From Perkinsus chesapeaki ATCC PRA-425 (taxonomy: Eukaryota; Protista; Perkinsozoa): DNA of 38,544 nt. Every line of letters starts with the position of its first letter. Positions within the stretch are counted from its first letter, which is position 1. The stretch lies in the NCBI GenBank assembly GCA_013115145.1, contig JAAPAO010000331.1:1-38544 (forward strand), in the 5' to 3' direction. The notes beneath the pieces were generated by a model that worked only from the letters and a program-made list of their open reading frames with translations, ran no database searches and was not told the origin of the DNA. Made by a program: the position numbers and the translations under genes. This document shows positions 1 to 36,660 of this stretch, in pieces.

Positions 1-215
1 ACCTTTTCGCGATTTCCGCGGTAATCACTAGGCGGTTACCAGGTTTTCGTGATTTTCAGGTGCATCTCCAATGGCAATTATTTCCAGTGTCGTCTCCGCG
101 GCTTTCGGCACGCGGATCTAAACCTGAGAAGTTTCTACGCAAGAACAATTCGAGAACATTATGCACAATTAATCCCATACCAAGCATAGTGTACTCAGTT
201 ACGTCACTCAGTTCC

Positions 216-12300: not shown

Positions 12301-13536
12301 ACGACAAATGTGCGGCGATAGACAGGAACTGTGTTACAATGGGGAGGTCTCGCTCGAATAACGGAAATCCACAACGGGGAAAATCAGCTCGTCAGATGTT
12401 CGATAATATCTGTTTGATATTACCTGGATCATTTTGGCCAAGCTGTTGCATGATACGAGCTCACAATCCCATTGTATTTAGTAGCTTCTTCGCGGACGGA
12501 CAGTCAGGATTCTGTATAGTGCATACCTCTTCGAAGTTCGGAGGAATTGTGGATGAAGTCGAAGATGCTCTTGTGAATTTTAGGCTTTCCCCGAAATGAA
12601 GTTCGCCATTGACTTGCGTCGAACTCGATACATTTCTTATCCGGCAGTAATATATTAAAATTCTGGGATTTTGTAGGGAAAGCTTTTTTCGAAGATGGTC
12701 TAGAGTAATCATTTGTGGCGATTTTAGGGTCCCCCTGACTAGAGGGCAATCGTCAACGGGCGGTGGCGGCGGTCCTCAAACGTATAACGCTCGGAATAAC
12801 CAAAGACATCATTCGGCTCATCAACCTCCACCACCGCCGGGACCACATATGACCAACAGGCCGGGAGGAGCATATGGGATGCTAATGAGCCCCACCGGTA
12901 ATGCGGCACCTATGATGGTTGGAGGCAGTCAACATATGGGCCCGCCGATGGGGCAGATGGGTGGTCATGGAGGGCCACCGCAGATGATGCCGATACATAT
13001 GACAGATGCTCCGGGAGTGAGGGTGCTTAGTGTACCATATGATAGCATTGGATCGGTGGTGGGACCGGGTGGGGTTGTCCTATGGGCGTTGCAGAATGAT
13101 TCTGGCGCGAAAGTCGATATGGAGAAGTCGGGGGTGCCTGGACAGCCAAGACCGTTGACTATCAAGGGTGACACTGTTAAGATAGAAAAGGCTATGGAGA
13201 TAATACATAGGGTTTTGCAGGTAAGGGGAGGGAAGGAGAGACATGTAGTAAAGTTAATGTAGGAATAGTTACGTGAATTGTAATAATAGAACTATTATAC
13301 GTAAGTATACGAACTTTTAAATGCTAATTTACTCACTAGTAAATTTAAAATCTCACTATTGAAATATTACACTTATATTATGGATTTGCGAAGTCTTAGA
13401 TTGCGCTACCGAGTTGCTTGCTATCACTGTTGCTTAGGGCCAGTTTGATGTCGATGACGCAATAATGAGGAGGAGGCAGTTGAGGCAACGTTACCAATCT
13501 GGAGAAGGAAGGGGCAATCAGACAGCTCAGGATTAG
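9378..13536 (+). CDS. Multi-KH-domain RNA-binding protein (FUBP/KHSRP-like architecture), multi-exon; well supported from ~10880 to stop at 13536, 5' part (9378-10690) tentative
   Basis: Three type I KH domains: IPESSVGSVVGPRGAVIRAIQRDSGAKLDI (10865 ORF); VPVEHVGNLVGPKGAVLRALQLDSGAKVDM (exon from 11280 after a 40-nt intron 11240-11279, completed by exon ~11970-12116 RALTISGLSPQV..); VPYDSIGSVVGPGGVVLWALQNDSGAKVDM (12849 ORF). Last intron 13221-13437; last exon GQFDVDDAIMRRRQ..* ends 13536. Confidence 0.85.
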
Positions 13537-13940
13537 GGTGTTATGGCCTATTAAAGACAGGCCAGGGATTTCGGGGGTTTCTGCAGAACTACTACGTTTT
13601 TTATTAATCGAGTTATCAACAACAGCTGGAGAAGGAAGCCTGCTGTGGGTCTCTTTTCTGAAGGGTTTTGCCTGCACCCTTTCGTTAATGAGTATGTGTT
13701 GAGCTATTTAAGTGTAAGAAAGTGAAGGTGGGAGCGAAGGATAGACCTGATCTATTAGATCAAATGCCTAGTTGTATACCACGCTACTAAGTTAACCGTA
13801 GCCCAATGTCGACAGTAGTATTATCAGATGATAATCTGCTAGTATGAAGTGTGTAGTGTGGGGGATGAGCCCCCGGTACTAGTCGGTCAGCTACTACCTC
13901 GTCAAGGAAAGTGCGACGTGTACGAAATCTCTCTGGGCAG

Positions 13941-14190
13941 CAGCTGTATGATGTGTCACTGAACCAGCTGCAACTGTACGAAATGGCCCTGAACGAGCGG
14001 CAACTGCACGGAATGGCACTGTATCAGTTGTAACTGTACCTAACAAAGTTGTACGGAATAATACTGTATCAACTTGATAGTATCAAGTTGATACTATCAA
14101 GTGCAACGAGACGAAATATTACTATACCAACTAATGCAAACATAGTTGGAAATGGACGGTTTGTCACTGTACGAGCTGCAACTGCACGGT
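13941..14190. repeat. Degenerate 30-bp minisatellite
   Basis: CAACTG(T/C)ACG(A/G)AATGGC(A/C)CTG-like units at exact 30-nt spacing (13941, 13971, 14001, 14031), with a further copy near 14165-14190. Confidence 0.75.
14066..14101. repeat. Compound fold-back scar with five alternating arms
   Basis: G-TATCAA-C-TTGATA-G-TATCAA-G-TTGATA-C-TATCAA-G; contains a perfect 22-mer at 14073-14094 (CTTGATAC). Confidence 0.9.
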
Positions 14191-14691
14191 ATGAAACTAA
14201 CACGAATTATGCTGTACGAAATAGGGTTGTAGCAGTTTGACCGCGTACGAATTGGACTCTGTACCACCTTGCACTGTACATATCATACTCGCCCGCCTAA
14301 TCGCGGTGGTCCAAAATGGCTTCTTTTCCCAGGGCACTTTAGATACCACCGTGCGTTCAAACGAGTCAAAATGCTGACTGGCAACATCTACCGGAACACG
14401 ATGTGTCCGACGCTTCCCTCGAATGGTGTTCAGAGGATTCTTCGGCCAGCAGCAACATCAGAGCTGCTCACAAGGCTGCGAACGAGGATAGAGTGCAGAG
14501 CGACTCAAGTTGTGATTCAGTTATGCAGCCTGGCCGCGGCAGGCATCGGACCTCTCAGATCCCTCCGATGACGAATCAGCTCACTGAGCTTGACAAGCTT
14601 GTTGACGAATAGCTTCTCCAGTAGCAGCCTGATTTCTTATTTTTTCTACGTAGACCTCTATAAACGTTTCAAGGGTTCTCGACAGAGATGA

Positions 14692-15875
14692 TATCAAGAC
14701 TTGATAATCAAGTAGTTACATTCATTCAATGCACTAACATATAATTGCACCTCAGGCCCTGAAGGTCAGTGCGCATAGATTGACTTCAATCACAGGCTGA
14801 TTAGGAAGGGTATAATATATGATATTATCATAATGATAATATGATGATCATATCGACGAGACACCAATCGACTAGTTATCAGCAAATGCGAGCATACTCT
14901 CTCAAATCCGAATCGTTGAACGTGATCGAGCTATCAAGGTAGTTTTTGCGTAGCTTCGCATACGTGAATGGGCTCCTTCGTGTGCGCAGTGCATCGTAAT
15001 AGATCGAAACCGGAATATCTCTTTCCGTCTGGGCACGTATGCATACCTTCCATCCCGTCGAATGCTATGATAGAATTGCTATCTTAGAGATAGCAACTGC
15101 GTCCGAGCGCGTCCGCCTGGCGTATGAGTCATACGGTATGACGCGCCACGTGTCTAGGGAAAGTCAGCTCGAGTCACGCAGGTAGTAGTGGAGCTGGATA
15201 CATAAGCAACAACTAACACCATCGATGATATTATCATTGGTCTGCGACTGTATGTGATGTACAGAAGCCGCTACGATAGCCACTGAATCTATTTTATCAT
15301 CTACATCTGCATCTACCATAACACTAGCTAAATCAAAAAATCCGTCTAAAATGTCCTCTACTATTTCGTAACTATTAGATAATTCAATTGTAGCACCTCT
15401 CAAAATTGCGTCAATTTCATGTTAGTTTCCTCGAATGCAGGTCACACAAAGCGGCAGCTGAGCCGGTATCAGTGAGCGGCTCACTTTGAGCCCGTAAAAT
15501 AAATTTTCCTCTAGAGAGCGTTGCATGCTCCATAGCGCTTCCGACACGTCTGGGGTTACAGCGGCATCAGCTGAAGTATCTTGTAGTACTCTCGTTCACT
15601 CTTTCACATCGTCTAGAGAGATTCGATCATCGCATCACGTTACGATCCCTGCGATGCATTACAGGCCAGTTAGCTCGGCGCGACATATCCCTCCTCGCGA
15701 AACTCCGAAAATGCGCAGTAGCTCGCATTGCAAGCCTTACGAATGGAAGTCATGGATTTGTTGGATAATCCAAGTAGGACTCAGGACATCTCTGGATTCA
15801 AAGCAGATTCAAGCCTGACACTGTCACGCTGACAGAGAATGTCTGCGCTCTGACAACGAACTTCGTTGAACGAAG
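14692..15875. repeat. Dispersed 22-nt fold-back scars
   Basis: Perfect: 14692-14713 (TATCAAGT), 14818-14839 (TATGATAA), 15121-15142 (CGTATGAC), 15854-15875 (CAACGAAG). One mismatch: 15471-15492 (AGTGAGCC). Confidence 0.9.
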
Positions 15876-16207
15876 CCCTAATGGAGCCAGTTTGACGGCC
15901 GGAGTCCGGCTTTAGTCTGCGGCTGAGCTGGCTAACGACGGAGTCCGGCGGTCGAACCACCTGACCACTGCTACGGTGCTTGGTATTTGCGGTGGGGGAG
16001 GGTGAGTGATCTGCGTGATAACGATTGGCTCACGTGAATTAGGTACACGTCAAACTCGTACACAGAATTTTTGACTTCTAACTGGTACATCAAACTTATT
16101 TACACCCGAATTCCAGTCAGGGAAATGTGATGTACCAAAAATAGGTCACTACCAAGTCGTACACAAAATCCCGTTCATCTTTGTGTTGCGGACAATGTCC
16201 GCACGAC

Positions 16208-16808
16208 ATGCCATTTTTAACTCGTCAAGTTAAAAATGGCATCACACCCCAAAATTTGGCGCCTAGACCGGGTAAAGTGCGAATCCCAAATTGACCGTCG
16301 ATCAAATGGGAAAGCAGATCGGACGTTAAAACCGGTTCGAGCCTCGAACCGGGAGCCCTCGAGTTTCGAAGAAAATGCTCTGCGGGCTAGACATAGAGCG
16401 GCTGGGTAGACATAATCTTATAACCTGGTTGCCTGATGCACGTCGAAGCGGGTCACAAACCCGAGGTTGGTACTTCACAGTATGTGCAAAACCCACTGGT
16501 AATCGGGGAGTGGCTGGAACATATATCCATCCTGTCACACGAATCCTGTGTCAATAAGCAATGCTAAGCATTGAATGCCCATCAGGGGTCCCGCGATAGT
16601 CAAAGGACGTCGTCCTTTAACCGGCACCAGAAGCGTGAAATTGGCATACTGGCAGTATGATACCGCATTGCAGTAACTGCAACGCATTACGCACTCCAGC
16701 AGCTGGAGTCCACCTCATGGCCTTTCACTGGCTGCCCACTAAACTTTAGTGACTAAAGTAGACTACTACCTTCTCCACAGGGCCGGGCTAACAATGTTAG
16801 CCTAACAT
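16208..16808. repeat. Dense cluster of palindromes and 22-nt scars
   Basis: 16208-16242 15-bp arms with 5-nt loop; 16332-16352 10-bp arms; 16559-16580 (2 mm); 16602-16618; 16645-16666 (1 mm); 16668-16682; 16694-16715 (1 mm); 16737-16758 (CACTAAAG, perfect); 16787-16808 (GCTAACAT, perfect). Confidence 0.9.
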
Positions 16809-16827
16809 TCGTTGCCGAACGACTCGT

Positions 16828-17045
16828 GCGGGTTTGGTGCATTAGATAGCTGAGCTACCTACTGCACCAAACCGTCACGCTATTATCACTATTATCACGC
16901 AAACATAATGAAATGACATTATGTGATGTATACCGCTTGGTGGTGTAAATCAAATGTCATGATCACTCCAAGGACGGCCAAAATGGGCTTGTAGGCAGAG
17001 TTCGGGTAGCCAGATCTTCGAACCGCACGGCCAAACTGATTACAC
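16828..17045. pseudogene. Destroyed copy of the tRNA-Met/tRNA-Leu cassette
   Basis: The first ~23 nt of tRNA-Met (GCGGGTTTGGTGCATTAGATAGC) are followed by their inverted copy. The cassette spacer (AAACATAATGAAATGACATTATGTGATGTATACCGCTTGGTGGTGTAAA) is intact. An 85-nt segment then keeps only the two ends of the Leu tRNA (TGTCA... and ...ACCGCACGGCCAAACTGAT). Confidence 0.85.
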
Positions 17046-17177
17046 ATCCAACGCATTACCGAGTATAGCGCCTTGATACTACTGAATCAGAGTCTTGATA
17101 CTACAGGTACTTATAGAACTGTGAACTGGGTTGCAAAAAGCACCGTCATGGTTCTTTTTGCAACCCATATGGCACCA

Positions 17178-17382
17178 CGGTGGTCACCACCGGGTGGTGC
17201 CGCCACCATAAGGCCACGACCCTTGCTTGACATGCAAATCAGCGGCCGGTTACTGCGACTCTGTGGGAGGCACCTCACAATATGAACTCATATTAGTCGT
17301 ATTATACGACAAGTGGGCCGGTAGTCCAATCACCTCCGCCATAGGTAGTCAGGTGGCCTAGGCAACAGTGTTGCCGCAACAC
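17178..17382. repeat. 22-nt fold-back scars
   Basis: 17178-17199 (CGGTGGTG, perfect), 17296-17310 single fold, 17361-17382 (GGCAACAC, perfect). Confidence 0.9.
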
Positions 17383-17397
17383 TGTCACCACTAATTC

Positions 17398-17606
17398 ACG
17401 TCATAATATGCAGCCCAATCTCTACGAGAGGAAAGGATTGGAACAATTTCAGAATAGGCCGACATCCACTAGGGATGACACAGGACAGACAAATATGGAC
17501 AGAAGAGAGCCATAACTAAAGAGGCATCCCCGACTCAGCCACAGCGAGTTCACAACAGAAACTGCCAGGCAGGGCGGTCAGTCGCACCGTGACACTGTGA
17601 CCGTGT
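17398..17606 (-). pseudogene. Decayed duplicate of a hexosaminidase intron/exon junction (paralogous to 22740-22920)
   Basis: Aligns with 22748-22919. On the minus strand, ...CGTAG|A GAT TGG GCT GCA TAT TAT GAC GTG (DWAAYYDV) matches DWAAFYDV in the main gene and is followed by a stop. Confidence 0.8.
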
Positions 17607-18041
17607 GGAAGGTGTCATTATAGACTTTAATAAGTGAAAATAGACCTTGTATTGAGGTAAGTTTTAGCCGGGTTTTCAGTTCTGGGACGCGAGGAATAGG
17701 AATCCGAGGGCGAGGCGGTAGTGTCGTAGGTAGTAGTTACTATAGTTAGTAACTGCTCTTGTGACAAGAGCATACAAAATACAATGAAAATCCTCGAAAC
17801 GTAGAACCTACACTCGAGAGGATTCGCTCGGCAGAAAGAAGTTGTTTCAAACAACATGCGTCTCCTTTGAGCTCATATGCAGGAGTCAACACCAAGCGCG
17901 TCTTATTACAGCACGCATATAACGTCTTATATGAGGCTTGTAACATGAGTTTTATACAAGTCTTTGGAGGCGTTGAAGATTCCTAACTCGCCACTAACAG
18001 CGGGCTTGGCCGCGCACTCCCTTAAATGTCATGTCACTCTC

Positions 18042-18063
18042 ATTTGCAGTGCAAATTTTGCAC
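18042..18063. repeat. Perfect 22-nt fold-back scar (ATTTGCAC)
   Basis: ATTTGCA-G-TGCAAA-T-TTTGCAC. Confidence 0.9.
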
Positions 18064-18227
18064 GCATACCACGCTAAATTGGTAATTCAGAACGACTCGT
18101 GCCTCGGCCGTAATGTGGGGAGGCATCAAAACTTCGAGACTGTCGATGGCAGCTTGTATCATTAACGGTGCACTCTACCTATCCTCCCTTCGTTAGGTCA
18201 CAGTATCCTCCTTTATCCATTTCCCTC

Positions 18228-18671
18228 ATGTCGGAGGCTCTGACCAACCCCTGTATTTCCTTTATGGTGATTCTTTTGTATGTAATTGGAGTAACGGAAT
18301 CTGTGATATACGGCTCGCAGTTTGGGAGCAATGATATCAAACTGTTGGTATTCTCTCCGGATGATGGCCGACCTGCTATCTTCACTCTCACCAATATAAA
18401 GTGTGTAACGGTGCCTGTATCATTCCGACAAAGCCCGACTGGTATTTCGTTCACATTTCGGTGGTCTACCATCGACCGGGTTAATTTTATTGGGGAGCTT
18501 AACAGTCTCGACGTAATTGCAAGAATGGTTCGCCCGGATGGTCTAAAGAAGCTGGTGCTCGACCCACAAATGCCCCTGTTAGACATGGGTGCAGGATATT
18601 GGGCTGGCGGTCGTAGACTCGCTGATGTGGATGCAGAGTTGCTGTACAATCACATCAAATGCGAAGAATGA
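18228..18671 (+). CDS. Intronless hypothetical protein, possibly secreted (start 18228 or 18264)
   Basis: Open frame with a hydrophobic N-terminus (MVILLYVIGVTES) followed by a globular beta-rich-looking sequence. No family recognised, and an equally long antisense ORF exists. Confidence 0.45.
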   Translation: MSEALTNPCISFMVILLYVIGVTESVIYGSQFGSNDIKLLVFSPDDGRPAIFTLTNIKCVTVPVSFRQSPTGISFTFRWSTIDRVNFIGELNSLDVIARMVRPDGLKKLVLDPQMPLLDMGAGYWAGGRRLADVDAELLYNHIKCEE

Positions 18672-19487
18672 CTCACTTCAGCTGCTCTCATGGGCTTTCA
18701 GAAGCCTAACGTTCTTCGACTATCAAAAGATCGAGACTCATTTATCGAGCAGCCTTGGCAGGGGAGTCATCCAATTCATCAGCCGCGATGGCAAGTCGAC
18801 GTGGTGCTACATTTTTTCCAGTAAAACTTGTTATTGTTTTGTTATTGGAGAGTAACAAATCAGTGTCATGTCGAATGAGTGACTCAAACTCCGAACCGAC
18901 GTGCTTTGATTTCATCCCAACCTCTCGAGTGAGCGCACCCTAATTTCACTTCGACACACTTCGTGTACCGTGCTATGAATCCCCTCAACGTATCCAGCAG
19001 GGCCGCTAGAAGCCATAAGCGGGGTGCGAGGACCGACGGATCGCTAAAGGAGGTAGATTCTAGCTCCATCACCAAGTAGGAGCTTTCGGCTTCTACCAGA
19101 CATGAGCCATGTAAGCACTGCTATTTAAGCTGACATTTGTGTAGGTGGATATATTTGTGGCCCAATTCGGCATATAGTTGGGGGATTGAGATTAGTTTTA
19201 CTGTTAATCTACGTTACACTATGTCCAAGTATTGTTATCCCACTACTGTATGCAATGAAATGAGCACATTGTCATAGGAACATCGTTTCATGCAGTTTGT
19301 TCACAAATATTAAATCAGAGAACAGTCGTACGAAAATTTGGTGGAGACAACATGCCGATGAACAGCAAGCTGTTCGGCATCACGAGGCAGAACTATAAAG
19401 TCACTGCAAGCAGGCGATGATCCGCTGTATCGAGTCGTCATCGGAGTTTCCCTAGGGCTCTAGCTTACGTTTCGCTGGCACAGAAAC

Positions 19488-19663
19488 ACCGCTACTAGCG
19501 GTCCGCTAGTGTGACGTTATCAATGATAACTTATCATGGACCTTTTTTTGTTATTCGGACAGCCTTTTCTCACAGTAGAGATATTTCTATTAGGATAGAA
19601 TTAAGGCAAACGTGAAGGCCTGATTAGTTATTAACTAATTGATTTTCTTAGGGGTAACCCCTA
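19488..19663. repeat. 22-nt scars and 1-nt-centred palindromes just upstream of the tRNA cassette
   Basis: 19488-19509 (ACCGCTAG, perfect), 19516-19537 (GTTATCAT, perfect), 19623-19639 and 19649-19663 single folds. Confidence 0.9.
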
Positions 19664-19815
19664 CCGCGAGATTGATGTCCCTATTCGCGAAAATGATTGC
19701 CTTATTCGCCAAAAATTTGTGGCCCTCAAACGCGAAATAGATTTCTGAAAAGCATAGTATACCAATATTCCTAGAATATTAGTCTCCAAAGGCTGAACTA
19801 AATTTTTGTCATCGA

Positions 19816-19888
19816 GCGGCTTTGGCGCAGTAGGTAGCGCGTAGGTCTCATAATCCTAAGGTCGCGAGTTCGATCCTCGCAGGCCGCA
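19816..19888 (+). tRNA. tRNA-Met (CAT), elongator type
   Basis: 73-nt cloverleaf; anticodon loop CT-CAT-AA; T-T at positions 31-39; TTCGATC T-loop; G1-C72, so not the initiator. Confidence 0.97.
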
Positions 19889-19952
19889 CTAATATATCAA
19901 ACATAATGGAATGACATTATGTGATGTATACCACTTGGTGATGTAAAGTTAA

Positions 19953-20034
19953 TGTCAGCTGTGGGATTCGAACCCACGAGGATCTCTCCACCAGAACTTG
20001 AGTCTGGCGCCTTAGACCGCTCGGCCAAACTGAC
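19953..20034 (-). tRNA. tRNA-Leu (CAA)
   Basis: GTCAGTTTGGCCGAGCGGTCTAAGGCGCCAGA-CTCAAGT-TCTGG..., long variable arm, GGTTCGAATCC B box, no intron. Confidence 0.97.
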
Positions 20035-20279
20035 TACACTCAGAACGCATCGCCAAGCACTTGGATTTGGTACTATTCATGTCATCAAGAGGCATCATTC
20101 AACAACACATTAGTACCACGCCATGGCAACCATTATTCAATACGCCAAACTAAGCTTCGTTCAAGCTGCGAACAAGAGTAGTTTTCGAACCAAAAGCCAA
20201 CCAACAGGTTGCGTAACCATGTCAGTCCACCCATGTGGCACGCTAGCAAATAAACGACCCGTCTTAGTGCACTGCCTGA

Positions 20280-20301
20280 CTACTACAGTAGTAGTACTAC
20301 C
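20280..20301. repeat. 22-nt fold-back scar (1 mismatch)
   Basis: CTACTAC-A-GTAGTA-G-TACTACC; low-complexity, so weaker evidence than the others. Confidence 0.65.
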
Positions 20302-20343
20302 CTGGCCTCGAGAAGCACCAAAATGCTGAGTGATGTTGTCCAA

Positions 20344-20430
20344 TGTTAAGTGCTGTAAAGTACCTAACATTAGACTACATCACTTAACATTTTGTAGTCT
20401 AATGTTAAGTACTTTATACAGCACTCAACA
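20344..20430. repeat. Long imperfect inverted repeat (~37-bp arms, 13-nt loop)
   Basis: TGTTAAGTGCTGTAAAGTACCTAACATTAGACTACA ... TGTAGTCTAATGTTAAGTACTTTATACAGCACTCAACA. Confidence 0.85.
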
Positions 20431-21526
20431 GTGTAAATGTATTTTGAAGAGAGCTGGACCGGTCACCGAGAATTGCGGTCCGCAAGGCAAAGCACCAGTG
20501 CAATGCACTCTGCGGATTGTACCACCACACCGTTTCGAGTGTTCGTTCAACAAACTTCGTTGATCTACCGTATAATGCAGTAGACCACAGCTTACAGGAG
20601 GAAAGACACCGGTTGTTCACCAAAATCGAGTCGAACGAGTTCTAACCAGAGTTCTGCAGGTTATTGAAAGATACTTCCACCTTACGAGGTGGAATACCTT
20701 ACAACACGACTTGTATATCCCAGCCGTCACTGTGCGTGTTTCGGATGCTACTTGTGTTGTAATTGGCCGATTGTTTCATTGTCCGTTATCGTTATTAGAC
20801 GTCAGTTGCACATAGAACATGACGAACACAAGAAACAAAATTAATATCAGAAATAGGCGATTTCAAGATTTCTTAAAGCGTTCAAATCCAATCTGCTTTC
20901 ACATAGTTTCATAAACTGGATACACGTCGACGCCGGTTGGAACGTCCCATTCTGGACACCACCACTGATAGTCGGTGAGGTTGAATCTAAAGAGCGAGAA
21001 AAGGACAGTAACTCTAGGAGAATCAAGATCGAACAAAGTACAGTAGTCTCGAGTAGAATATTATATCGCAGTTAGGGCAATTCAATTAACTGCGGTATAC
21101 AACGAGATAAACGATACTGTCGGTATCATACTGAACACACTGTCAGAAAAGAAAACCGGAAATCCGTCACCGGCAGTCTTTTTCAACTCGTAGTTAGGTC
21201 AGGCTTCAACGCCAAGCTAGTGAAGTTTGTAGCATACATCAGCAATAACCTTCAAGGCCAGACTTGGTGACGGCCACGGCATCTTACATATAGGAGGTGC
21301 TGGGATTGGAGATATCCTTATAGTTGCCAATCGGTGCAATATCGCCGGGGGCGCTGTGACCAAGGACGGCTGCAGAGAGAAAGCAGCGGGTTCTGAAAGG
21401 CAATACGAAGTATTATTATTGAAGCTGTCTGGGAAGCTAGTGTGGACAATGTTAATGATCAACATTAACGATTAATAGTTGATGATTCATTCAGAATGGC
21501 TGATTCTGTATGTAATGCTGAAGCAA

Positions 21527-21551
21527 TTGGACAAAGCGACGCTTTGTCCAA
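21527..21551. repeat. Perfect palindrome, 12-bp arms, 1-nt centre
   Basis: TTGGACAAAGCG-A-CGCTTTGTCCAA. Confidence 0.9.
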
Positions 21552-22227
21552 AAAAACGCTTTGTTTGGAGAAATGCATGCATTTTTGGTATACGAGGAGT
21601 TTCAGGTCGAAGTTTGATCGTTTTGGAAGGTTATTGATTCGCCATCATGTATATCGAACTGGTACGCACTACTGATGACCAACAGCTATATGGACTGTTG
21701 AATTATTGTTATTTTTGTGGCTTTATAATATTTCGTTTAGGCTTATCTCCACAAAAAGGTCGATCATACATCGACGGACTTGCCACGTTCAACAGTTCCG
21801 TAAACCCGGAATGGGCTCTCACAAATTATCCAAGTTATAAGCTACAGCCGTAGCTAACAAAAAAGAAAAACTTCAACTCTAACCGAACATTTGAGAAAAT
21901 TCATGGAAATAAGTATTTGATATTGCTCGAAATAATCATCGAAGCTTGAATTTCATTCGACCTCTGCCGAGAGAAAAGTGCTAAGAAAACATTCCACAGG
22001 ATGGTTGTGGATGCAGATTCGTTCTTGCATGAGTAAAATACCATCATTTATTATCTTAAAGATGCGATATTGCTGCACCCCAAAGATACGATGTTTAATT
22101 GAGCACTTCGTCCCCACTGAACCATTTCCACCGGCGGAAGAATGACAATGCTATAATCGCGTAGTAGTTCTGTGATAGTCACAATGATGTCCCAGCCAAA
22201 GATAGACAACTCGTTCTTCATCCTCAC

Positions 22228-25200
22228 CTGGCCAGTCTATTAACCGCCCATTCATGGTTAAATGGACAGATATCATCCTCAGCACACCATAGCCTCTCCG
22301 CAACAGCAGCAGCTCTGGGCCATACTCGGGGCATGAAGACACTCTCATCAACCGACTCGCCTGCAATGAGGGCAATCGATCCAGAGGAACGTTGGATTTT
22401 TGGGCCCAGAAGGAATGTGTCATTTATTGCTTCCCTTTGGTTGTCTAAAAACGTATTTTCTACCAAATTTCCGTCGTATCTCCTTTTCCGCATTTCTGTG
22501 CGACTAGATGCCCCCGTGGCTCGCTCTGGTTCAGTTTTGCGCATTCTGAATTCCACATCGAATGATTAGATCCAATACGCCACCTGGTTCAACCCGAAAA
22601 ACTTTTCAATTAGCCGCGCACATTTGATGGTTCATTTCAAGACTTGGTCGGCGAATTGAGGAAATAGCGGTATGAGCCTACCCCACATGCAAGCCTCCCC
22701 TCCAACCAAAATGCCATTCTTGTCTCGTTTAAAAGGGACGTCGTAAAATGCAGCCCAATCTCTGAGAAAGGAAATAATAGCTCAGCATCCACTAGGGATG
22801 ACACAAGACAGATAAAAATGAACAGAAGAGAGCCATAACTAAAGAGACATGATGTCTCAGACATCCCCGACTCGGCCACAGCCAGGAACTGCCACGCAGG
22901 GCGGCCAGTCGCACCGTGTGCGAGAATCAGTAACGAAACGTTCTCCATGTTGCGTGGTGAGAATCAATAACGAAATGATCTATGACACCTGCATTTTCTG
23001 GGCGAATCACCAATTTAGTGGCACTAAGTCCAATTTCAAGAGTTTTTCCTTGAAAGATTGAAGGTGGCGAGCTTGAAACATATAATAATATATAGTAGAA
23101 GTACAAGGTTATAAACCCGATTTTATACAATACACCAAATAATCGAAATATACAAACTTACTGCCCAAGTAGATCAAGATAGAAAGCAGAGCTGAAAATT
23201 AAACTTCTGAACTTCCCAGACTCTGCCATCTAAAAACCAAGTTATGAAAGCGATTGTGTGATCGATTTACTCACAGCCAGTGTCCTTGAGGCATCGTACA
23301 GCCAAATCTGCCATGTGTCCACAACATCCGTCTCTGTAGGGTTGTCATTCAGGAAGTCATTCCACAGAATCACAGTTGCTCCTGGAATGCAAATGAATTC
23401 CGATAAGCAATTTTCGGAGACAGGATTTGTGTCGGGGACAATTTTATTGTGCAACGCCAACGGCACGGAAAATTGCTAAAATTTTCTGGTCGGGTTAGAC
23501 TGGGGCAAGCTCGATCCATTGGTGATCGAGTTGGGAGAGTTGGATGAAAGTAATTAAGTTAATTCCTTTTCTACTGTTATTAATTAAGTGCATTAATTAG
23601 CATAAGAATTAACTAATACATTAACTAAGTATTAGATAATTGGATCTCTTCAGCATTTCTAGATGTCGCGCACTGTAATTAATCAATTTAATTATTGAGA
23701 AGACGAATTAGCATTTACCATTAATTTTATTTTATATCAACTATCATCAATTATTTTATGAAGGTAAATATTAATTAACATTATTAATTCATATAAATTT
23801 ATTAAGGTTATTAAGGTTACCTTTTGTATAACTTTTCTCAAGTTCTCCTTTTACAAGTGTTTCAGGAAGTTGTCTGTCCCAACTAACCCGCATGGGTTAC
23901 CTGTTTTCTCTTTAACTTCCTTCACCGCATGAGACAGCCAATAATCGACTAAATCTGTGCGGTTGTGGAATTTGCTAACAAAGCGAGGTAGCATTCAGCC
24001 ATTCAGGTAGGATACTCACCCGTGTTCTTGTGTCCATTTGGTGAGGGCCGCGGAATCCCAGGCATCACCGATTTCGTCACCTCCAAGGTGGAGCACCTTA
24101 TCTCCTGAAAACTGTACTTCCATTTTCGTCAAGTTAGCTAAATATTAATGCGGCAATGAGTTTAGTGATGCTTCATGGAAAAATACTCTATGCACGGCGA
24201 ACTTTCGAGCGGATTGCCGCACTCGATTTTTCATCCAGCACGCCGAGCTTGATTTTTGTCAGGCTCTGTACGATAAAGATCGTCATTAGTTATCGATGGA
24301 CTCATCGAGCTTTACCGTTATTGATTCTTCCGGATGCGTTGTTATAGAAGATATCCACGACCTCGGACATCACCGCGACGGTCATCTCTCTTGTCTTATC
24401 ATTTATGGGGTCCATCCAATACTTGGCGTCACCAGTGAGCCAGGGATATCTGATGACAACAAGGATAAACGGGACACCACCGTGGAGAGGAGGGACTGTA
24501 TTTCGCTCACCCATCGACGCAACACAAAACTGCTTCACATTCGGCGTCCAAGTGAAAAGTTTTGAAAAAGCCTACTTTTTATGACGTGACTGTAAGTCTC
24601 TCCGAGTCTAGCTCGTGAAGATGAGATTGCTACTCGGTTTTACAAACCCGAAACCGAGGGACAATTTTTCCCAAACTAGACTGAGCCATTTTCGGCAACG
24701 GTCCATGGTACGGCTGGTATCAATAGTAAAGGACGACTTCTCACCTCATCTTTCTTAGAGTGAAATTTTATAATGAACTATGAACCGTTTGGTTTTTTGT
24801 ATTTTCCAAACCTATTTGTAAAGGGTTTCAAAACTTCATTGGTCGAGTATTTGATCTGGAATCGGATGAAAAGTTATGGGACACCTTTCACAACGCAATC
24901 CTCTTACCCTCGGAGCCAGCTGGTCGTATGTGCTGGAACGTCAATCTCGGGTATCACTTTGATGCCCAAACGGTTCGCGAATTTCACGACGCTTCTCACC
25001 TCCGCCGGAGAGTAACTGAAGTTGCGTCGCCGACCAGGCGTGAAGTTGGCCTACGAGACAGGTGTGGGGTTCTTCTTCTGAAGGTCGGGGAAGCTATCGA
25101 GCTTCAATGAAAAGCTTATGTCGTCCGAAAGATGCCAGTGAAGGACATTCATCTGAAGAGGGAAGGGGACACTGCCCTTTCTAAAACGCTCGCAATTCTA

Positions 25201-28030
25201 TCAGCCTCGTCCGAGATTTCCGGCGGTGTCGATGCCGCCAGCTATTCTGGAAACTTTATAACAATTCGCTCACACCGTGTTCTGGAAGTGAACATACTTC
25301 AGGAGGGCAGTGTAGTGAGTTCATTAGTGTTTAAATATATGCATGTTCTCGCGGCGAATATGAACTGGCGGAAAAAATAAATTTCGAGATACTTCACAGA
25401 GTTCTTTGCATTAAAGAACATGTTATCTATGGCGATTCGGCGGAGTCAACCGAGGAAGAATCAACCAGAACTAGAATTTATAAAACTGTTGAGCGGGTCG
25501 AAGACTGGCAACCTTGAATCAATCTTCGATGGAGTGGTGGATGGCCCTTATACAGAGAGTTATTGGGGAGCATTAAACGTTCCCAGAAATGATGCATTTG
25601 GTCACCAAATTTTGGTGCTCCTCCAGGCCCTAGGGACCAATTTTCAAACGGAGTTCCTAGTATACAGGGTTTCCGCATTACGAACATCTTTTAGGTTACA
25701 CGTGAGGGTAGATAAATCCATTGTCGTTCGCCGAGCTCACCTTCGTCCAAGCCATAATGATGAGGTTCTTCTCAATGACACTGACCGGGAGATATCTGCG
25801 TCCTGTGTCGATAAGCATCCCCCGGTGATCGAAGGAGGGGTAATCGACGACAGTGAAGCCGTGGTAAAGCAGTGAGAATAAGTCCTCCTTGTGGTTGTGT
25901 GCGATTTGGAACTGAGGAGCCGACAATGTGGATACGGCTATGCCACGACGTTCTCTGATGATCGATATTGATTATGTTCAGTCACAGTGACAGAGTAGAG
26001 ATGTCAATCAATGACTGCCGAAGTTCCCACACCACTTACACCGGTGGCAGCTCCATACAAGAACCCAACTCGTGTGCTGTACTTCATGTGGCATCTCAGT
26101 TTCTCGCAGTTCAGCTCATAGCCTTCCCTCGGCTGCTCACTGTCGTAGACTACGGCGGTCTTTACGGGGTTGCCGCCTGAGAAGCTCGATGTTTGCATTC
26201 TATTCGCCATGTGGCGCCGTAACCTTCTTACAGATTCGATGGCCAAAAATACGGAGAATAATAAATCTATGTTGAGCTAGATACGTAAGGTTTAAGGTTC
26301 ATATACAGGTATAAGATTTATGTGTACGGCTCATACTGCATTGAAGTCAACTGAGTGAGCTACAGGGACTGAAGGCCTAGAAGCCAGTGAATAATCAGCG
26401 GCTTTGGCGCAGTAGGTAGCGCGTAGGTCTCATAATCCTAAGGTCGCGAGTTCGATCCTCGCAGGCCGCACTATTATATCAAACATAATGGAATGACATT
26501 ATGCGATGTATACCACTTGGTGGTGTAAAGTTAATGTCAGCTGTGGGATTCGAACCCACGAGGATCTCTCCACCAGAACTTGAGTCTGGCGCCTTAGACC
26601 GCTCGGCCAAACTGACTACGTGAACAATGAATCACCGCGGATACCGCACTCGCATATTGAGCTTTAGTTTTACGTCATCAACCAACTCTATCTCTCACGA
26701 AGGCGAATGCGCAGCGCAGTGCACCCAAGCAAGCGGTGAACCCTTAAACAACCAGTAGCCCGAAAACTCGAAGCCCAGAAACCGTGCAAAGGGATGGGCT
26801 ATGAGCCCGTAAACTGGCCGCCGCGGCGCGAGGGTGTAAATGACCTTATGGGTTTAAATTGCGAGCATAGACACGCACCCATGTTCGCAACATAAGCTCA
26901 AAGGGTCCAACCTGGGAGAGGAGGGTGGGTCAAAAACGCGGTAGAAAACAAATTATTATGGAATGCATGCACTGCCGCCCCGAACCTAGAAGGACCTTAT
27001 TTTCCTGCAAGTGCATGCACAGCGCACAAGGATTGTGCGCACGTGACCTGCTGACAGCAGGCTGCTGTCCGTGCACGCGTGCCGCAGATTGACGACAACA
27101 ACTAAACTTGTCTACTTCGTAAACCTCACATATTCTACTGTGTTGCACACTATTATAAGGAAGAACAATGGATATAAGTGTGACCGTGACAGCAAGCGTT
27201 CGACTCATGGCATGATTCGACGTTGGACGTAAATATGACCCTTCGAAGACATCCTAGGCCCTCCTAGACATTCTGAATGCCTGGGTTCGGCATGCTCAGC
27301 GAATAACTAAGCATCGACAGTTTGGCCGAGTGGTCTAAGGCGCTGGCTTAAGGCGCCAGTCCGAAAGGGCGTGGGTTCGAACCCCACAGCTGTCAAAGCT
27401 ATTGCAGCTTACTTTTCTGCTTGTACAAAGTCTTCCTCACAAAATCTAGATCTTCCTGCACCACTGGACCATTCGTTGAGCCTTTCCTCTCCGTCGATTC
27501 CTTTCCAAGATAAAAATCAAAATAATATTCACCATCGTTGAAGATATCTACAACGAAGCATGGTCAAAGATGCACCAACGCCGACGTTGTTTACTCTGAA
27601 CTTTCGGGTTAATCTTCATACTCTTCGGAACTGGCCATACGAGCAGTTCCGGTTGAGGAGGGACACTCGCAGCAGCGACTCTGATACAAGGAGGTAGTTG
27701 GATTGCAAAGAATTCGGTGGAGCGAATTTTTCGTTGAGAACGCACGAAGTTGTCGCAAAATCAAATTTCTGCCAACAGATTTGCTTCGCCCAAATGTTAA
27801 CCAACTCGATGCCTATCCTGCAAGACTCAACCAGGAATACTTCGAGAAGTGTGAATGACGATAAGAGATTCTTATCAACAATTTACGTTGCTCAGGTTGT
27901 CTAATGCATGATAGATTATTCGGAGGTCGAGAGTATCCGTGCTCAGATTGACTCCAAGAGCAGAAAATGTAAAGTTCCTCGAGACTTACATAATCGTCAG
28001 GAAGCTCGCAATGATATTCCTGCTCGGCAT
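22228..28030 (-). CDS. Beta-N-acetylhexosaminidase (GH20), secreted, about 13-14 exons identified; one in-frame TAG at 25051-25053; terminal exon(s) unresolved (possibly ~21217-21340)
   Basis: Spliced exons give: signal peptide MPSRNIIASFLTII (28030-27990) | VAAASVPPQPELLVWPVPK (27680-27595) | ... EGYEL..RVGFLYGAAT | DYPSFDHRGMLIDTGRRYLP | MNVLHWHLSDD..IKVIPEIDVPAHT (25152-24907) | LHLGGDE (24104-24020) | VILWNDF | SSAFYLD | QDWAAFY..VGGEACMWG (22761-22682) | ESVDESVFMPRVWPRAAAVAERLW (22360-22228). These are canonical GH20 motifs in order, with compatible intron phases where checked. Confidence 0.93.
22844..22865. repeat. Perfect 22-nt scar (GAGACATC) in a hexosaminidase intron
   Basis: GAGACAT-G-ATGTCT-C-AGACATC; the paralogous position 17521-17528 has only GAGGCATC. 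Confidence 0.95.
26398..26470 (+). tRNA. tRNA-Met (CAT), copy 2, intronic in hexosaminidase
   Basis: Identical to 19816-19888. Confidence 0.97.
26535..26616 (-). tRNA. tRNA-Leu (CAA), copy 2, intronic in hexosaminidase
   Basis: Identical to 19953-20034. Confidence 0.97.
27047..27068. repeat. Perfect 22-nt scar (CCTGCTGT) in a hexosaminidase intron
   Basis: CCTGCTG-A-CAGCAG-G-CTGCTGT. Confidence 0.9.
27316..27395 (+). tRNA. tRNA-Leu (AAG), intronic and antisense to hexosaminidase
   Basis: GACAGTTTGGCCGAGTGGTCTAAGGCGCTGGC-TTAAGGC-GCCAG...GGGTTCGAACCCCACAGCTGTCA; the 7-nt loop gives anticodon AAG. Confidence 0.95.
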
Positions 28031-28180
28031 TCCGGGAAACGGAACAACTACGAAGATCCTACTCCTGGAAAACCACACTTTCGAATCCTTCATCGGCGAT
28101 TATTTTCGAGAATAACTGAATTATTCAACACGGAAAAGATAGTAGATGGTGGATGGCCCCCAAATGTGCGCTACTTGGCA

Positions 28181-29302
28181 AATAAAACACTCGAAACCGA
28201 ACCAACTACTCGATAACGACGATAAGGCAGGCTCGTCATGGGCCATCGCTTAAGCTGGAACGAGCAAGCCTTCGACCGAGGCATTTGGCGAGTAACATTT
28301 TTGGGAGCCAGCGGAAGCTACCGAACATGAGTCTGAGTACCCCTACAGAAATGTGCTAAGCAAGATCCAAATACACCATTTCCAGACCTGTTCAAATAAA
28401 GCTCAGACCGTCGATTTCGATGATACGCCACTGGATCTGATCGATCGCCTATAACCATGGTACACGCTAATTCTTATCCCAGCGCGACCCATCCAAGACG
28501 CGCTTGAGTAGTGGTGGCTATCACAATGGTGCTTCAACTATATGTTAACATTGTATCCACGGTGTTCAGTTATGGGAGATAGATCGGTCCGCGGCGGAGT
28601 GCTTCATCGACCACATAGACGCCACGATGATATGACACGCGTTGTAGTGCTACGAGTGAAACTCAGTGACTTTACTACACTTCATGTTGACCGTCACTAG
28701 AGTTTGATTTCCTGGCTCACAAGATTCTCTAGTTCAACCCTACCAAATAGGTCTCGCGCTTTACTTAATTGTTCTGGGGTTTTACTAACTTGCTCTTGAA
28801 ATGGTGTATATGTTGTCACTGACAAGTTGCCAGCATGGAGGTAGAACGCACTTGTGGAAGATCGGAGATCGACTCTATCGAAACCATAACATTAAATCGG
28901 TTACATTCTCTCCTGAAGAAGCTTGTGTTCCCCCAACAACAACAACATCATCATAGGCAAGTTGCCCGGGGCAACTTCTATCAATTGAGAGCACTGCTGT
29001 TGCTGAGAACTGCAGAAAATTCAACAGCTTACAATTGATAAATACCCACGCTGTTGGTCCAACAGATGCATTGTTGCCGATTAGGCAATATAGCGTTCTC
29101 TAGTTGTTCGATATCAGTATCGGTGACACTAATCCAGATTTACTATCGCGAAATCTAGTGCCCGGTCTTTTTCCAAATATAAAGATACCCTTGCCCCAGC
29201 GTGATTAAAACACTCGAAATCAAAACAAAGGTTCAATAACGACAATCAGGTCGACTGTTCATGGGCCATCACCGTAGCTGAAATGAGAACCATAGACGCA
29301 GG
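28181..29302. repeat. Pair of diverged ~100-bp direct repeats (28181-28280 and 29204-29302)
   Basis: Shared blocks TAAAACACTCGAAA, ATAACGAC, TCATGGGCCATC and AGCTG at matching spacing; they cover the C-terminus and 3' flank of the 29246-29479 ORF. Confidence 0.7.
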
Positions 29303-32300
29303 TTCGATCCCGGCACCTCGCAACTTACGTCTCTTCGGAGCCACCGGTGCTTCGAGTGCGGCTGCCTTGTGGGCGTCAATGTAGACCTTACGCTGGAGAA
29401 AAAGTGCGATAATTAACAGAAAAACCGACAAGCCAAATCCAAGCGTGAAGGCAAGCAAGACTCGACCTGAGGGAGACACTGTGTTGAGCCCGCAGTAGAC
29501 TGAAGAACAAGTCCACCCAGTTAGACTATGTTGTGTTCGATCCAGTAACCTAGAACCAGCTTATACTATCCCTACAATTCAGAGATAAATCTATATATCT
29601 TTTATGATAGGAAGTAGACTAAACCTGACTGGCTACCATGCAGTGTTCGATAATGCCGAGGCGAGAGCATTGCTGTGATGGTACAATCTCAGAGAGCTCC
29701 CAATATTGTAACATTACAGCAATACGGTCACACGTAACATCACGGCCGATGACAGGAATAAGATCACAATCGAGTCAATGCCCCCATGGCGGACTTATTA
29801 GTTGTTTGGAAATGATATAAAGCTGCTGCGGTCGACTAGCACCGAGCGCCAGCGGTAGTAGACTCATGAGCCTTCTGCTGAATATACAATTCGATATTGT
29901 GATACAATATATGGGGGAAGACATTATAATCCCACGTCCCAGCATAAATTATTCTATCATTTCAGATCTCAAACTCTCCAGGATTATTGACCGATTCGGA
30001 CAATTCGGTTCACTCAAGAAAATAGATATGCGAAATCTGGGACTACTATAGCTCGCATTAGTTACTGCAGAAGCTTCTCTTCAAGCTCTATAAAGTCATT
30101 CCTAGCGGAGCGAAGCGTTTCATGTTACCGGTTTTTCGCGAGATAGCACGGCCTTCATCAACGTGGCCTTCCTCTAGTAGAACCGCCGTGTTGATCTCAT
30201 CAACGGCGAGATCAAGAAACTGCGAAGCAAATCTTGCGCGCCACGAAATTATGGCTCACCTTGACCAATCGTGTGCTCTGAGTCGCCTCAGTGGATGGCA
30301 CAGTGAGGAGAAGGAGTAAACAAGTTAGAAAAGTCATTAAAAGGTAATAGCTACAAGAGCATCTTAGCTTGGAGCGCGGAAGATACAAATGAGGTTGAAG
30401 GTAATACAACAAGAGAAGCTTATGAAGCGTAATCAACTTTACCATGTTACATTTAATTTCAACTTCTTCCCGTGCCTACGAATTCCCGTGAAGTGCTGGC
30501 TACCCCAAAAAAGGAGCGTTAACTCACCGACAGTCGACGACGTTACTGGCCATCCTAAAACTGCAACTTCCGAGGTGCACCAAATGCAGATGAGATAAAG
30601 TCCGTGACTTGACTCTGAAAAAATAAAACCCAATAGAGTCGAATCTGCTAATGCTACACCATACGGAGGCTCATCGAAAGAATAGAATCGATACGTTGGA
30701 AAGGATTCCTGATCCCGAGGATCTTCATCTGCGTCGGTGGTCCACTGGCAACAATTTTGCGCGACTTTTTGTTAGTACTTTTTGTTAACTTTTTGTTAAA
30801 GTATTTTTGTTATTCTGGACGCTCGTTCAAGGTGGTTGGCAATCTGACTATATCATTCCTTTCATAGATAGTCTTCCTAGATAGACATATCATCTGTGTT
30901 CCTTCATGTAATAAAGAGGTAAGTGGGAGGTGACATTTCAGAAGTGACTAACATTCGCCATAAAAATATCTCACTTCAACCGAGCCCGCTCTCTTCCGTG
31001 GCAGCCAGGGCGGAGACTCTACCTCCCTGGGAATCTTTGGCGGTGTCGAGTAGCCTGCCAATCTGCTGACAGCGAAAGTTTTATCATCGAACCCTACCTC
31101 CAGGAGCTATATGCTTCTCGGGAGTCGACTTGACCTTCTCCTGAGAATGATGCGAATAACTACTAATTGAAATGACTGCCTCGTAGACGACAACGAAACT
31201 GCTTTCCCGCGATAAAGTGCTCTTGTAGCACCAAGAGTCAGGCCCTCTCTATCAGGCACTGATTCGTGTTCGGGCAGTCCGTCCAGAAGGAACGTCTCCA
31301 CCTTTCTGTTTGGTAGTCCAGCAACACATTTTGTGGCCCATTGTGTCTCGGCATTGCAGGCGTTTTCAGCTTCTTGCGGAAAGCAATAATCGGCGGTGAG
31401 ATGCTTCCTTGATTGCACTGTGCCATTATTTATTTCTAATATCGATGTCATAGAGGGATAATATGACTATTTACATTGGGAAGTAATACAGTACCCGTGC
31501 CGCCTCACCAGTCTGGAAGTGCGTTAATACCGAATACTTCTACATTCTGATTTTAATTACAAAATTATTTGTTATTTTATTCGGTTTAAGAATCATCAAA
31601 TCCATGGAGCTAGGAAATGAACTCCTGTGCTCCAATCAGATATCTCGCCAGAATAATACCGAATCGTTACTTCGCGAACTATCCTCGCTCCTCATGAGCC
31701 TTACCGTAGAAATGATGCTCCCGCTCGTGGCGCAAATCTGTGCTACCTCCGAGTGGATGTTTTTTTCTGCCTCATTTCGAGACCTAACAGGTTTAGCAGT
31801 CCATACCACAATTCCTTTTCGAAAGGGAACGTTCACAAAAAAATCGATCAACCCTGTTCGAGTGAGTCGATCAACAAAAGGTTTAAGCGAACTCTCGTCC
31901 CAGAATCACAAAATCCTAAACTCTCAGAAACCACACTTTCCGACTGAGCTATCTTGTAACTAGCAACAGCTGAACGACGGCGAGAAGTATCCAACAGAAA
32001 CGGTTCCAGAGAGCTCACCGTGAATTATCAGTTGTACGATGTTTTTTATGCGGAGGACTGGAGTCGTGCCGTGACGAGCATTCCATAAATATTTCAGCAA
32101 GTGGCAAGCTGGAGGTGAAAAAATGACATAATTGTTGTGCAAGCTTACTCGCCCCCACAAACTCTAGAGGAACCACGTGTGAGACACACCAATAGTTGAG
32201 ATCGTGCGGCTTTGGCGCAGTAGGTAGCGCGTAGGTCTCATAATCCTAAGGTCGCGAGTTCGATCCTCGCAGGCCGCACTATTATCTCAAACAAAATGAA

Positions 32301-33045
32301 ATGACATTATGTGATGTATATTTATTAATATAATATAAACTATATATATAATTATAATAACCAGCTATACGATAACTAATAATATATTCTATTCACTAAT
32401 AATATCTATATAAAATACCAATAAATGGTAATATTGCTATAGGGATAAATTTATATAAGTATACCACTTGGTGTTGTAAAGTCAATGTCAGCTGTGGGAT
32501 TCGAACCCACGAGGATCTCTCCACCAGAACTTGAGTCTGGCGCCTTAGACCGCTCGGCCAAACTGACTCTGCACATCCCTCGCGATATCTCGCCAAATAT
32601 CCTAATTCAGTTACACACTTTTCTATGTATCCTTCTGTGAACACTTTGACAATTGATTCGGATAGAAGCCTTTCAATGACCAAACACCCAAACAGAGTGT
32701 TGTCAAAAACAGTAACTATCATTTTCCCAAGTTGCTAATTGCAACGACCGAGAGTTCATCCCCGAAAGTATATCAATCTATTTCCTCTCTCCCTGTGGGA
32801 AAGACTTTTGTTTAATATTTCTCCCTGCCCCCCAGCGCCAAGCGTTCCCTTTATTAAACAACCAAACGAAGCCTATGCTTGAATAACAGCATGACAAGCG
32901 TGATGATGGAATCAACAGTCAAAGTCTTGCGGGACGATTTTGCCTTCTGGACACCTGAAAGACGAAAAATGTTTTTTGGGCAACTTCCCGAGAGCACAAG
33001 CCGCCTATCCATCAATAAGAATCTATTTATTTTCATAATTGGCAT
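29246..33045 (-). CDS. Probable multi-exon hypothetical gene(s) ending in a single transmembrane exon; structure unresolved
   Basis: Last exon has a clear TM helix (VLLAFTLGFGLSVFLLIIALFL) followed by basic residues. Several AG/GT-bounded open segments upstream (~31.1-31.4, 31.6-31.8, 32.0-32.1 kb). No family recognised. Confidence 0.35.
32206..32278 (+). tRNA. tRNA-Met (CAT), copy 3
   Basis: Identical to 19816-19888. Confidence 0.97.
32321..32463. other. AT-rich insertion in the tRNA cassette spacer, flanked by a GTATA direct repeat
   Basis: Absent from the other three spacers; GTATA occurs at 32316-32320 and 32459-32463. Confidence 0.85.
32486..32567 (-). tRNA. tRNA-Leu (CAA), copy 3
   Basis: Identical to 19953-20034. 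Confidence 0.97.
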
Positions 33046-33109
33046 CTTTCACAATATCTATTAATTCCGATTATTTAGATTTCAAATCCTCCCAGCTCAC
33101 ATAAAACTA

Positions 33110-36100: not shown

Positions 36101-36660
36101 CCTGCGGCTTGAGCTGTTGTCGATGCCACTGTTGTTGGTTGAGATGGAGCGAGTGTTGCTACTGCTGCGGGGGAGGCGGTGGTGGGAGCGGAATCTAACC
36201 GTGAGGTAATGGTTGCATGAATCGTATTATTTAGTGCGATTGTGTTATGGTTAAGAAACTGTCCCCACAAAAATCAAGCGCTTTCTCTCTGGACCGAACA
36301 CCTGATGCTCCTCTATGTGTTTCGGCAGAATCTGCCCGCTTGCTGCCACCGTCCGAGATGAGGCGAATTGAACACGACAGCACCGACAATAACTTACTGA
36401 GAATAACTTTGCCAAGATGAGACTTCCCAATGGTAATCCCCGCTGTTAGGCGGAAAAATAAAAGGAGAAATGCCGGCCCAATGAGCCGCAGACGAAATAA
36501 GTCGATGGAAGAATGTAGTAACATTAGATGAGTTGGTTAAGATGTTGGCTAAGACATCCAAAGGTCGCGAGTTCGAATCCCAATTAACGCAAAGCGATTT
36601 TATCAACAACTGTTTCGCATGTAGCATCATCTGTGATGTCATTTATTCGAGTCGGCCAGA
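33110..36660 (-). CDS. Multi-exon mucin-like single-pass membrane protein (boundaries approximate; may be more than one gene)
   Basis: Thr/Ala/Pro/Ser-rich exons (APTTASPAAVATLAPSQPTTVASTT ~36.1-36.2 kb; SSTTIAPSQPTTAAAVITT ~35.35 kb; PTVPPITLAPTTVAPTTTPP ~34.85 kb), then TM helix IPLLLLCGIFVITALVLFLWYK and Ser-rich cytoplasmic exons with GT-AG boundaries. Confidence 0.5.
33172..33201 (+). pseudogene. tRNA 3'-half relic
   Basis: AGGTCGCAGGTTCGAATCCCACCGACTCCA followed by TTTT; B box intact, T-stem mismatched, no 5' half. Confidence 0.55.
35678..35790. repeat. AT-rich 17-bp minisatellite
   Basis: (AGTTTATATGTATATAT)n, three exact units plus degenerate units. Confidence 0.9.
36518..36591 (+). 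pseudogene. Degenerate tRNA (Ile-AAT-like)
   Basis: TTAGATGAGTTGGTTAAGATGTTGGCTAAGACATCCAAAGGTCGCGAGTTCGAATCCC aligns with eukaryotic tRNA-Ile(AAT) (TTAGCTCAGTTGGTTAGAGC...CTAATAA...AAGGTCGCGGGTTCGATCCC); acceptor stem lost. Confidence 0.55.

Follow-up and report, generated by a model that had tools for sequence, protein, structure and literature searches.

A class of 22-nt scars in Perkinsus chesapeaki and its likely origin in hAT-type transposon excision, as seen in a duplicated hexosaminidase gene fragment

Background

When the same short word stands plain in one copy of a duplicated sequence and as a 22-mer in the other, which of the two states came first, and what kind of process leads from one to the other? 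The question is raised by contig JAAPAO010000331.1 of the shellfish parasite Perkinsus chesapeaki (assembly GCA_013115145.1), which we analysed in its entirety (38,544 nucleotides, the 38.5 kb window of this text). Two paralogous stretches of this window, copy A (17398-17606, plus strand) and copy B (22738-22919 in plus-strand coordinates, within a hexosaminidase gene on the minus strand), each carry a 22-mer at a place where the other carries an 8-mer. The 22-mers, called scars below, have the form X[1-7]+revcomp(X)+X[2-8], where X is the 8-mer. We argue that they are probably repair scars from the excision of a cut-and-paste transposon with hAT-type chemistry, and that A and B were each hit once after the duplication.

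Results

At the first of the two sites, A reads ccataactaaa-GAGGCATC-cccgactc, with the plain 8-mer at 17521-17528, and B reads ccataactaaa-GAGACATGATGTCTCAGACATC-cccgactc, with a perfect scar on GAGACATC at 22844-22865 (GAGACAT+GATGTCTC+AGACATC), 79-100 nt upstream of the 3' splice site of its intron. Both flanks are identical between the copies, the plain site in A represents the empty-site state of the B scar, and the MAFFT alignment of A with B has a single clean 14-nt gap here. The second site is the reciprocal of the first: B reads gtcg-CACCGTGT, with the plain 8-mer at 22912-22919 as the empty-site state, and A reads gtcg-CACCGTGACACTGTGACCGTGT, with a scar on CACCGTGT at 17585-17606 that carries one G>T change in its middle arm. 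The initial annotation, which had described these paralogous segments with plain and scarred 8-mers, could align the second site on its left flank only; its strings were verified in the sequence, the pairwise alignment agrees with them, and the paralogy does stop at that site, flush with the 8-mer. At both sites the difference between scar and plain 8-mer is a clean 14-nt indel, which, together with an independent pair of scarred and empty haplotypes in P. olseni (see below), bears out the proposal that the 22-mer is a derivative of the plain 8-mer by gain of 14 nt. Another perfect scar, on GGCAACAC, is found at 17361-17382, 15 nt beyond the left end of copy A.

FOL47_005990, the GH20 hexosaminidase gene that contains copy B, is annotated on the minus strand over 21284-28284. 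Alignment with the GH20 loci of P. olseni (L001) and P. marinus (L002) places the 3' splice site at 22763, and therefore 22738-22762 is the start of an exon and the remainder of B is the 3' part (157 nt) of an intron of about 400 nt. Copy A falls within the intergenic stretch 13537-18227, between a KH-domain gene (8546-13536) and a 147-aa gene (18228-18671). By BLAST the paralogy extends over 17398-17591/17606 and 22738-22918/22919, and both BLAST and MAFFT find A and B to be the sole copies of this stretch in the window. The aligned core is identical at 148 of 167 positions (88.6%; p = 0.114, Jukes-Cantor distance 0.123) and, besides the 14-nt differences, the alignment has two more indels, of 17 and 10 nt. 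Since A shares the exon start of the hexosaminidase, then meets a stop, has no further homology and is intergenic, we regard it as an isolated fragment copy of about 200 bp, with B as the probable source. The segments had first been taken for intron paralogues with slightly different bounds: the paralogy holds, whereas the range is 17398-17606 against 22738-22919 and the first ~25 nt are exon start, not intron. Rfam returned no RNA gene match for the repeat. The intron that holds B (22763-23163) measures about 400 nt in P. chesapeaki against about 45 nt in P. olseni (L001:1404-1448), and its 5' part has two 19-nt direct repeats (GAGAATCA.TAACGAAA.G).

The same scar form recurs along the contig. 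A scan of the window recovered 22 perfect, 21 one-mismatch and 12 two-mismatch scars, for which 50 Markov shuffles gave 0, 0.02 and 0.22; with 22 perfect and 21 one-mismatch copies against 0.0 and 0.02, the pattern is not due to chance. When word length (5-12) and offset (0-3) were varied, enrichment appeared at length 8 and offset 1 alone (22 vs 0). Among perfect palindromes whose arms reach 7 nt or more, those with a 1-nt centre were 30-fold in excess (80 vs 2.4 expected), whereas even-centred palindromes (0 or 2 nt) were at or below chance (2 vs 2.6). Footprints with shorter palindromic tracts that retain both target copies had counts near chance, so that one repair product dominates. In the one-mismatch scars the odd base lies in arm 1, the middle arm and arm 3 in 11, 8 and 8 cases, and 56% of the arm mismatches are transitions; as they are spread evenly over the three arms and have this composition, we interpret them as ordinary substitutions that followed scar formation. 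The target logo has T2/A7 in 45% of 43 sites, a moderate tendency above the 28% background (p = 0.004), and T1/A8 is depleted.

Scar formation had been described as frequent and as continuing, and the scan of the window supports this description: the 36-nt five-arm chain at 14066-14101 is precisely the sequence expected if a scar on GTATCAAG was hit again in its middle arm without a change of the 8-bp register, and the age spectrum is flat (22, 21 and 12 scars with 0, 1 and 2 mismatches). A different arrangement occurs at 305-352, where twin palindromes, each with a single central base and with arms of 12 nt in one and 8 nt in the other, are connected by a short filler and both rebuild the 8-mer TCATAGGC; it shows two hairpins that were unfolded over 8-12 nt and were not annealed in register. 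Longer hairpin-like inverted repeats, with arms of 12-45 nt, were seen at 20341-20433, 16208-16242, 17127-17167 and 21527-21551, the last with a perfect single-base centre and resembling a one-sided long footprint.

The scars of the window are located in intergenic DNA and introns, and their density is uneven. It amounts to 6 per kb in 1-2000, 4.1 in the intergenic stretch 13537-18227, 1.9 in the intergenic stretch 18672-21283, 0.4 in the GH20 gene range and 0.1 in 28285-38544, and falls to 0 in the KH gene and the 147-aa gene, where the window scan found no scar. Selection against exonic 14-nt insertions explains part of this distribution and leaves unexplained the ten-fold spread among non-coding stretches. 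The densest cluster of the contig, 1-2000, includes several overlapping or nested scars (269-297, 1268-1296).

For comparison we used eight other Perkinsus loci: the two GH20 loci named above, L001 (P. olseni) and L002 (P. marinus), two P. chesapeaki GH20 loci (L003 and L004) and four P. olseni loci (L005-L008). Scars are present at similar density in the other P. chesapeaki contigs (8+5 in 12.3 kb of L003, 1+2 in 4.1 kb of L004) and occur in P. olseni (9+6 in 26.5 kb of L007, 1 in L005, 1+1 in L008). A perfect scar at L007:13412-13433 corresponds to the plain 8-mer CACTCATT in L005 and L006, with a clean 14-nt gap between these P. olseni haplotypes, and brings to three the sites at which both empty and scarred states were seen (two in A/B, one in P. 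olseni). Another scar, at L007:9940-9961, is perfect in L007 and L008 alike and has two substitutions in L005 and L006. Because this scar is shared by P. olseni haplotype contigs that come from different assemblies and are ~12% diverged, the scars are genomic, inherited and long-lived, and are not artefacts. In L007 the stretch 20400-26516 is occupied by a degenerate element with an integrase (rve) open reading frame and several broken minus-strand reading frames, and contains nine scars in 2.8 kb; it clusters with a 646-bp second member only.

A sole insert with an 8-bp duplication and inverted termini was met as a candidate donor, at 32321-35785, and was rejected as an AT-rich low-complexity similarity to a tandem repeat. 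An AT-rich tandem repeat with a unit of about TATATATAGTTTATATG (35680-35775) occupies part of a low-GC region that holds hardly any scars. A 138-bp AT-rich insertion (32321-32458), flanked by the 5-bp direct repeat GTATA and not an 8-bp-duplication element, is present in the third only of three head-to-head tRNA-Met(CAT)/tRNA-Leu(CAA) modules; the other two have the empty site. These modules are found at 19816-20034, 26398-26616 and 32206-32567, with a spacing of 5.8-6.6 kb, and a fourth, partial copy of the spacer at 16887-17081; the tRNA-Leu gene at 19989-20027 has identical copies at 26571-26609 and 32522-32560. The annotated range of the hexosaminidase gene encloses one of the modules (26398-26616) as well as a tRNA-Leu(AAG) gene (27316-27395).

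Discussion

In the proposed history, about 200 bp from the hexosaminidase exon/intron junction (B) were first copied to the intergenic position of A, after which each copy would have been hit once, GAGACATC in B and CACCGTGT in A, the same 8-mer in the other copy being left unhit. At each hit a transposon would duplicate its 8-bp target on insertion. On excision, the transposase would nick one base inside each flank, and the freed 3'-OH would attack the opposite strand. Each flank would thereby end in a hairpin, covalently closed, that has at its tip the complement of the flank base bordering the element; the hairpin strand would read 1..7-c8..c1 on the left flank and c8..c2-1..8 on the right. 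We infer that in Perkinsus a nick on the 3' side, 8 nt or more away from the tip, opens these hairpins, and that the resulting 3' tails, which would be inverted copies of the 8-bp duplication (c8..c1 on the left, 1..8 on the right) and fully complementary over 8 nt, anneal with each other. Trimming of the flaps, a 7-nt fill-in on each side and sealing of the nicks would then give 1..7 c8..c1 2..8 as the sole possible product, that is X[1-7]+revcomp(X)+X[2-8], 14 nt longer than the original site. No intermediate forms would be enriched, because opening nearer to the tip gives tails that are unable to pair, and scars could outnumber elements without limit, since a cut-and-paste element leaves one per departure.

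The assignment to hAT-type chemistry is suggested by geometry and target preference. An 8-bp target duplication is indicated by the enrichment of length 8 alone and by the 305-352 twins, which rebuild one 8-mer; a flank hairpin with a 1-nt offset is indicated by the enrichment of offset 1 alone and by the excess of single-base-centred palindromes, the palindrome centres of a scar being by construction the complements of X8 and X1. Nicking of the flanks with hairpin formation is known from Hermes, whose transposase reportedly (Zhou et al. 2004) nicks one base into the flank before the hairpin forms, and a 1-nt palindrome centre is therefore predicted, as is seen.

V(D)J coding joints offer a parallel in their P nucleotides, palindromic additions that result when covalently closed hairpins are opened off centre. 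The hairpins made by RAG lack the 1-nt offset; they are cut open a few bases away from their tip, and classical end joining unites the ends, whereas the scars would require opening at least 8 nt from the tip and joining by annealing over 8 nt. The footprints of the hAT elements Ac/Ds and Tam3, for which Coen and others put forward the hairpin model, keep the 8-bp target duplication, and their palindromic insertions are centred as in the scars, those of Ac/Ds having at their centre the complement of the base beside the element (PMC5873905). Hermes also has an 8-bp duplication and prefers nTnnnnAn targets (PMC10368747), towards which the scars show a moderate tendency, weaker than a strict consensus. 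In the precise excision of mPing (PMC4561436), as in the scars, the target duplication supplies the homology for a stereotyped repair; there, direct copies anneal and one is lost, whereas in the scars inverted, hairpin-derived copies would anneal and 14 nt would be gained. Our search of the literature returned nothing on uniform 22-bp scars, nor on end joining or break repair in Perkinsus.

Several points weigh against an origin of the scars in hAT excision with one hit in each copy. Known hAT footprints are heterogeneous and mostly short (28 types in 128 events, with tracts of at most 3 nt, in Candida; heterogeneous, with arms up to 20 nt, in yeast), whereas the Perkinsus scars are nearly uniform, with one product in which the whole 8-mer is inverted. 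The lean of the targets towards nTnnnnAn is moderate, and both 8-mers of the A/B pair depart from it. A donor with an 8-bp duplication and inverted termini was found neither in the window nor in L001-L008; likewise, the filled state suggested as a check, with a full element between two copies of the 8-mer, was looked for and none was found. A search for transposase domains in 82 of the 89 listed reading frames of at least 80 aa in the window, and in the ten longest open reading frames of the other loci, found none, and the large indels between P. olseni haplotypes yielded no clean duplications. The lack of a hAT element in 38 kb does not exclude a hAT element in the genome. The paralogy of A and B, moreover, ends to the base at CACCGTGT, the 8-mer of the A scar, a coincidence that has a chance of roughly 1-2% at the local scar density and that a simple duplication followed by two hits leaves unexplained. 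Possibly copy A was itself captured during the repair of an excision break, a link at which the flush right end and the scar 15 nt from the left end both hint. Finally, the A/B sites are without an outgroup, and the 6-7-nt direct repeats within a scar could, mechanistically, allow exactly 14 nt to be deleted between them.

The last point leads to a reversed polarity, in which the plain 8-mer would be the derived state at one or both sites, a scarred ancestor having lost exactly 14 nt by slippage or by microhomology deletion between the direct arms. The arms of a scar do form direct repeats of 6-7 nt with a spacing of 14 nt and a hairpin-prone core between them, and the perfection of a scar gives no date, since scars can be as old as the ~12% divergence of the P. 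olseni contigs. An outgroup that could settle the order is lacking: the corresponding intron of P. olseni (L001) and P. marinus (L002), tried for this purpose, has ~45 nt against ~400 nt and is unalignable; no third paralogue was found, the P. chesapeaki GH20 loci L003 and L004 sharing exon sequence only; and exact-protein look-ups with the GH20 protein and the 147-aa gene, which matched this contig alone, revealed no other haplotype of the window. A 22-mer of the scar form cannot be primordial, and a scarred ancestor would have had two scars within 190 bp, which is improbable in an intron with 0.4 scars per kb. Scars also persist: the P. olseni scar held in common is retained in all three haplotypes, and the counts of 22, 21 and 12 bound total scar decay at ~6.7x the per-site substitution rate. 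A rate model with rough birth and decay rates and constant formation assumed, which is not a test, gives, from the local density of perfect scars, 0.72 expected gains for A and 0.14 for B after the duplication. Under this model it would be probable that both scars arose after the duplication, by two gains; one gain with one precise loss would be an unlikely course, and two losses would have a negligible share. Taken together, we consider a derived 8-mer at either site to be rather unlikely, and favour two gains after the duplication, as was proposed at the outset.

As to the process itself, an element of another superfamily with flank hairpins or 8-bp duplications, such as a Mutator-like element of the Muta1 type (8-9 bp), Merlin, Zisupton or Novosib, might be thought of instead of a hAT element. 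Muta1 does make flank hairpins and 8-9-bp duplications, but a 1-nt offset is not apparent in its hairpins, of 43+43 nt, and its excisions are precise in over 90% of cases (PMC5499845). Mutator-like footprints, with duplications of 9-10 bp, sometimes 8 bp, and mostly precise excision, are not matched in the window, where the scan found no 9-mer or 10-mer analogues, and the moderate T2/A7 tendency of the scars points to hAT; we therefore regard another superfamily as quite improbable. Still less credit can be given to a process independent of transposons, such as template switching during replication, fold-back priming or a host nuclease that makes staggered breaks, which we hold to be highly improbable. 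It would agree with the donor element not being seen, and inverted repeats can indeed arise by template switches; however, three arms from one 8-mer are impossible without a prior duplication, fold-back priming predicts neither a fixed length of 8 nt nor a fixed 1-nt centre, and the palindromic target preference points to a dimeric enzyme. That the scars were produced by sequencing or assembly is an idea with practically no weight left: the single sequencing run found to contain the window may be the assembly's own source, but the same scar is present in three separate P. olseni assemblies with independent substitutions, and scars avoid genes and decay like neutral DNA. A hAT-type excision, with one hit in each of A and B after their duplication, thus remains the explanation that we consider probable.

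Conclusions

Excision footprints are normally too short and too varied to be recognised in genome sequence, whereas each scar of this class declares its ancestral site, its size change of +14 and, via the mismatches between its arms, its age, so that transposition history and neutral decay could become directly measurable. The A/B pair provides internal empty-site controls within one contig, and further copies of the element family at L007:20400-26516 would yield scar polarity by consensus. With roughly one scar in each kb of P. chesapeaki DNA, the scars contribute substantially to the indels of introns and intergenic DNA, and they are potential markers, nearly free of homoplasy, for strains and haplotypes.

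The uniform product is also a testable clue to double-strand break repair in Perkinsus and bears on genome editing in this genus. As a tentative idea, on balance doubtful, Perkinsus may mend hairpin-capped excision breaks almost solely in one way, in which both hairpins are unfolded and the inverted copies of the target duplication anneal. If so, tip-proximal hairpin opening and classical end joining would be absent or bypassed in Perkinsus, and such breaks may in addition take up ectopic fragments, copy A with its scar-flush end being a candidate; each excision would leave one self-identifying, datable 14-bp mark, and the genome would be a countable ledger of tens of thousands of transpositions.

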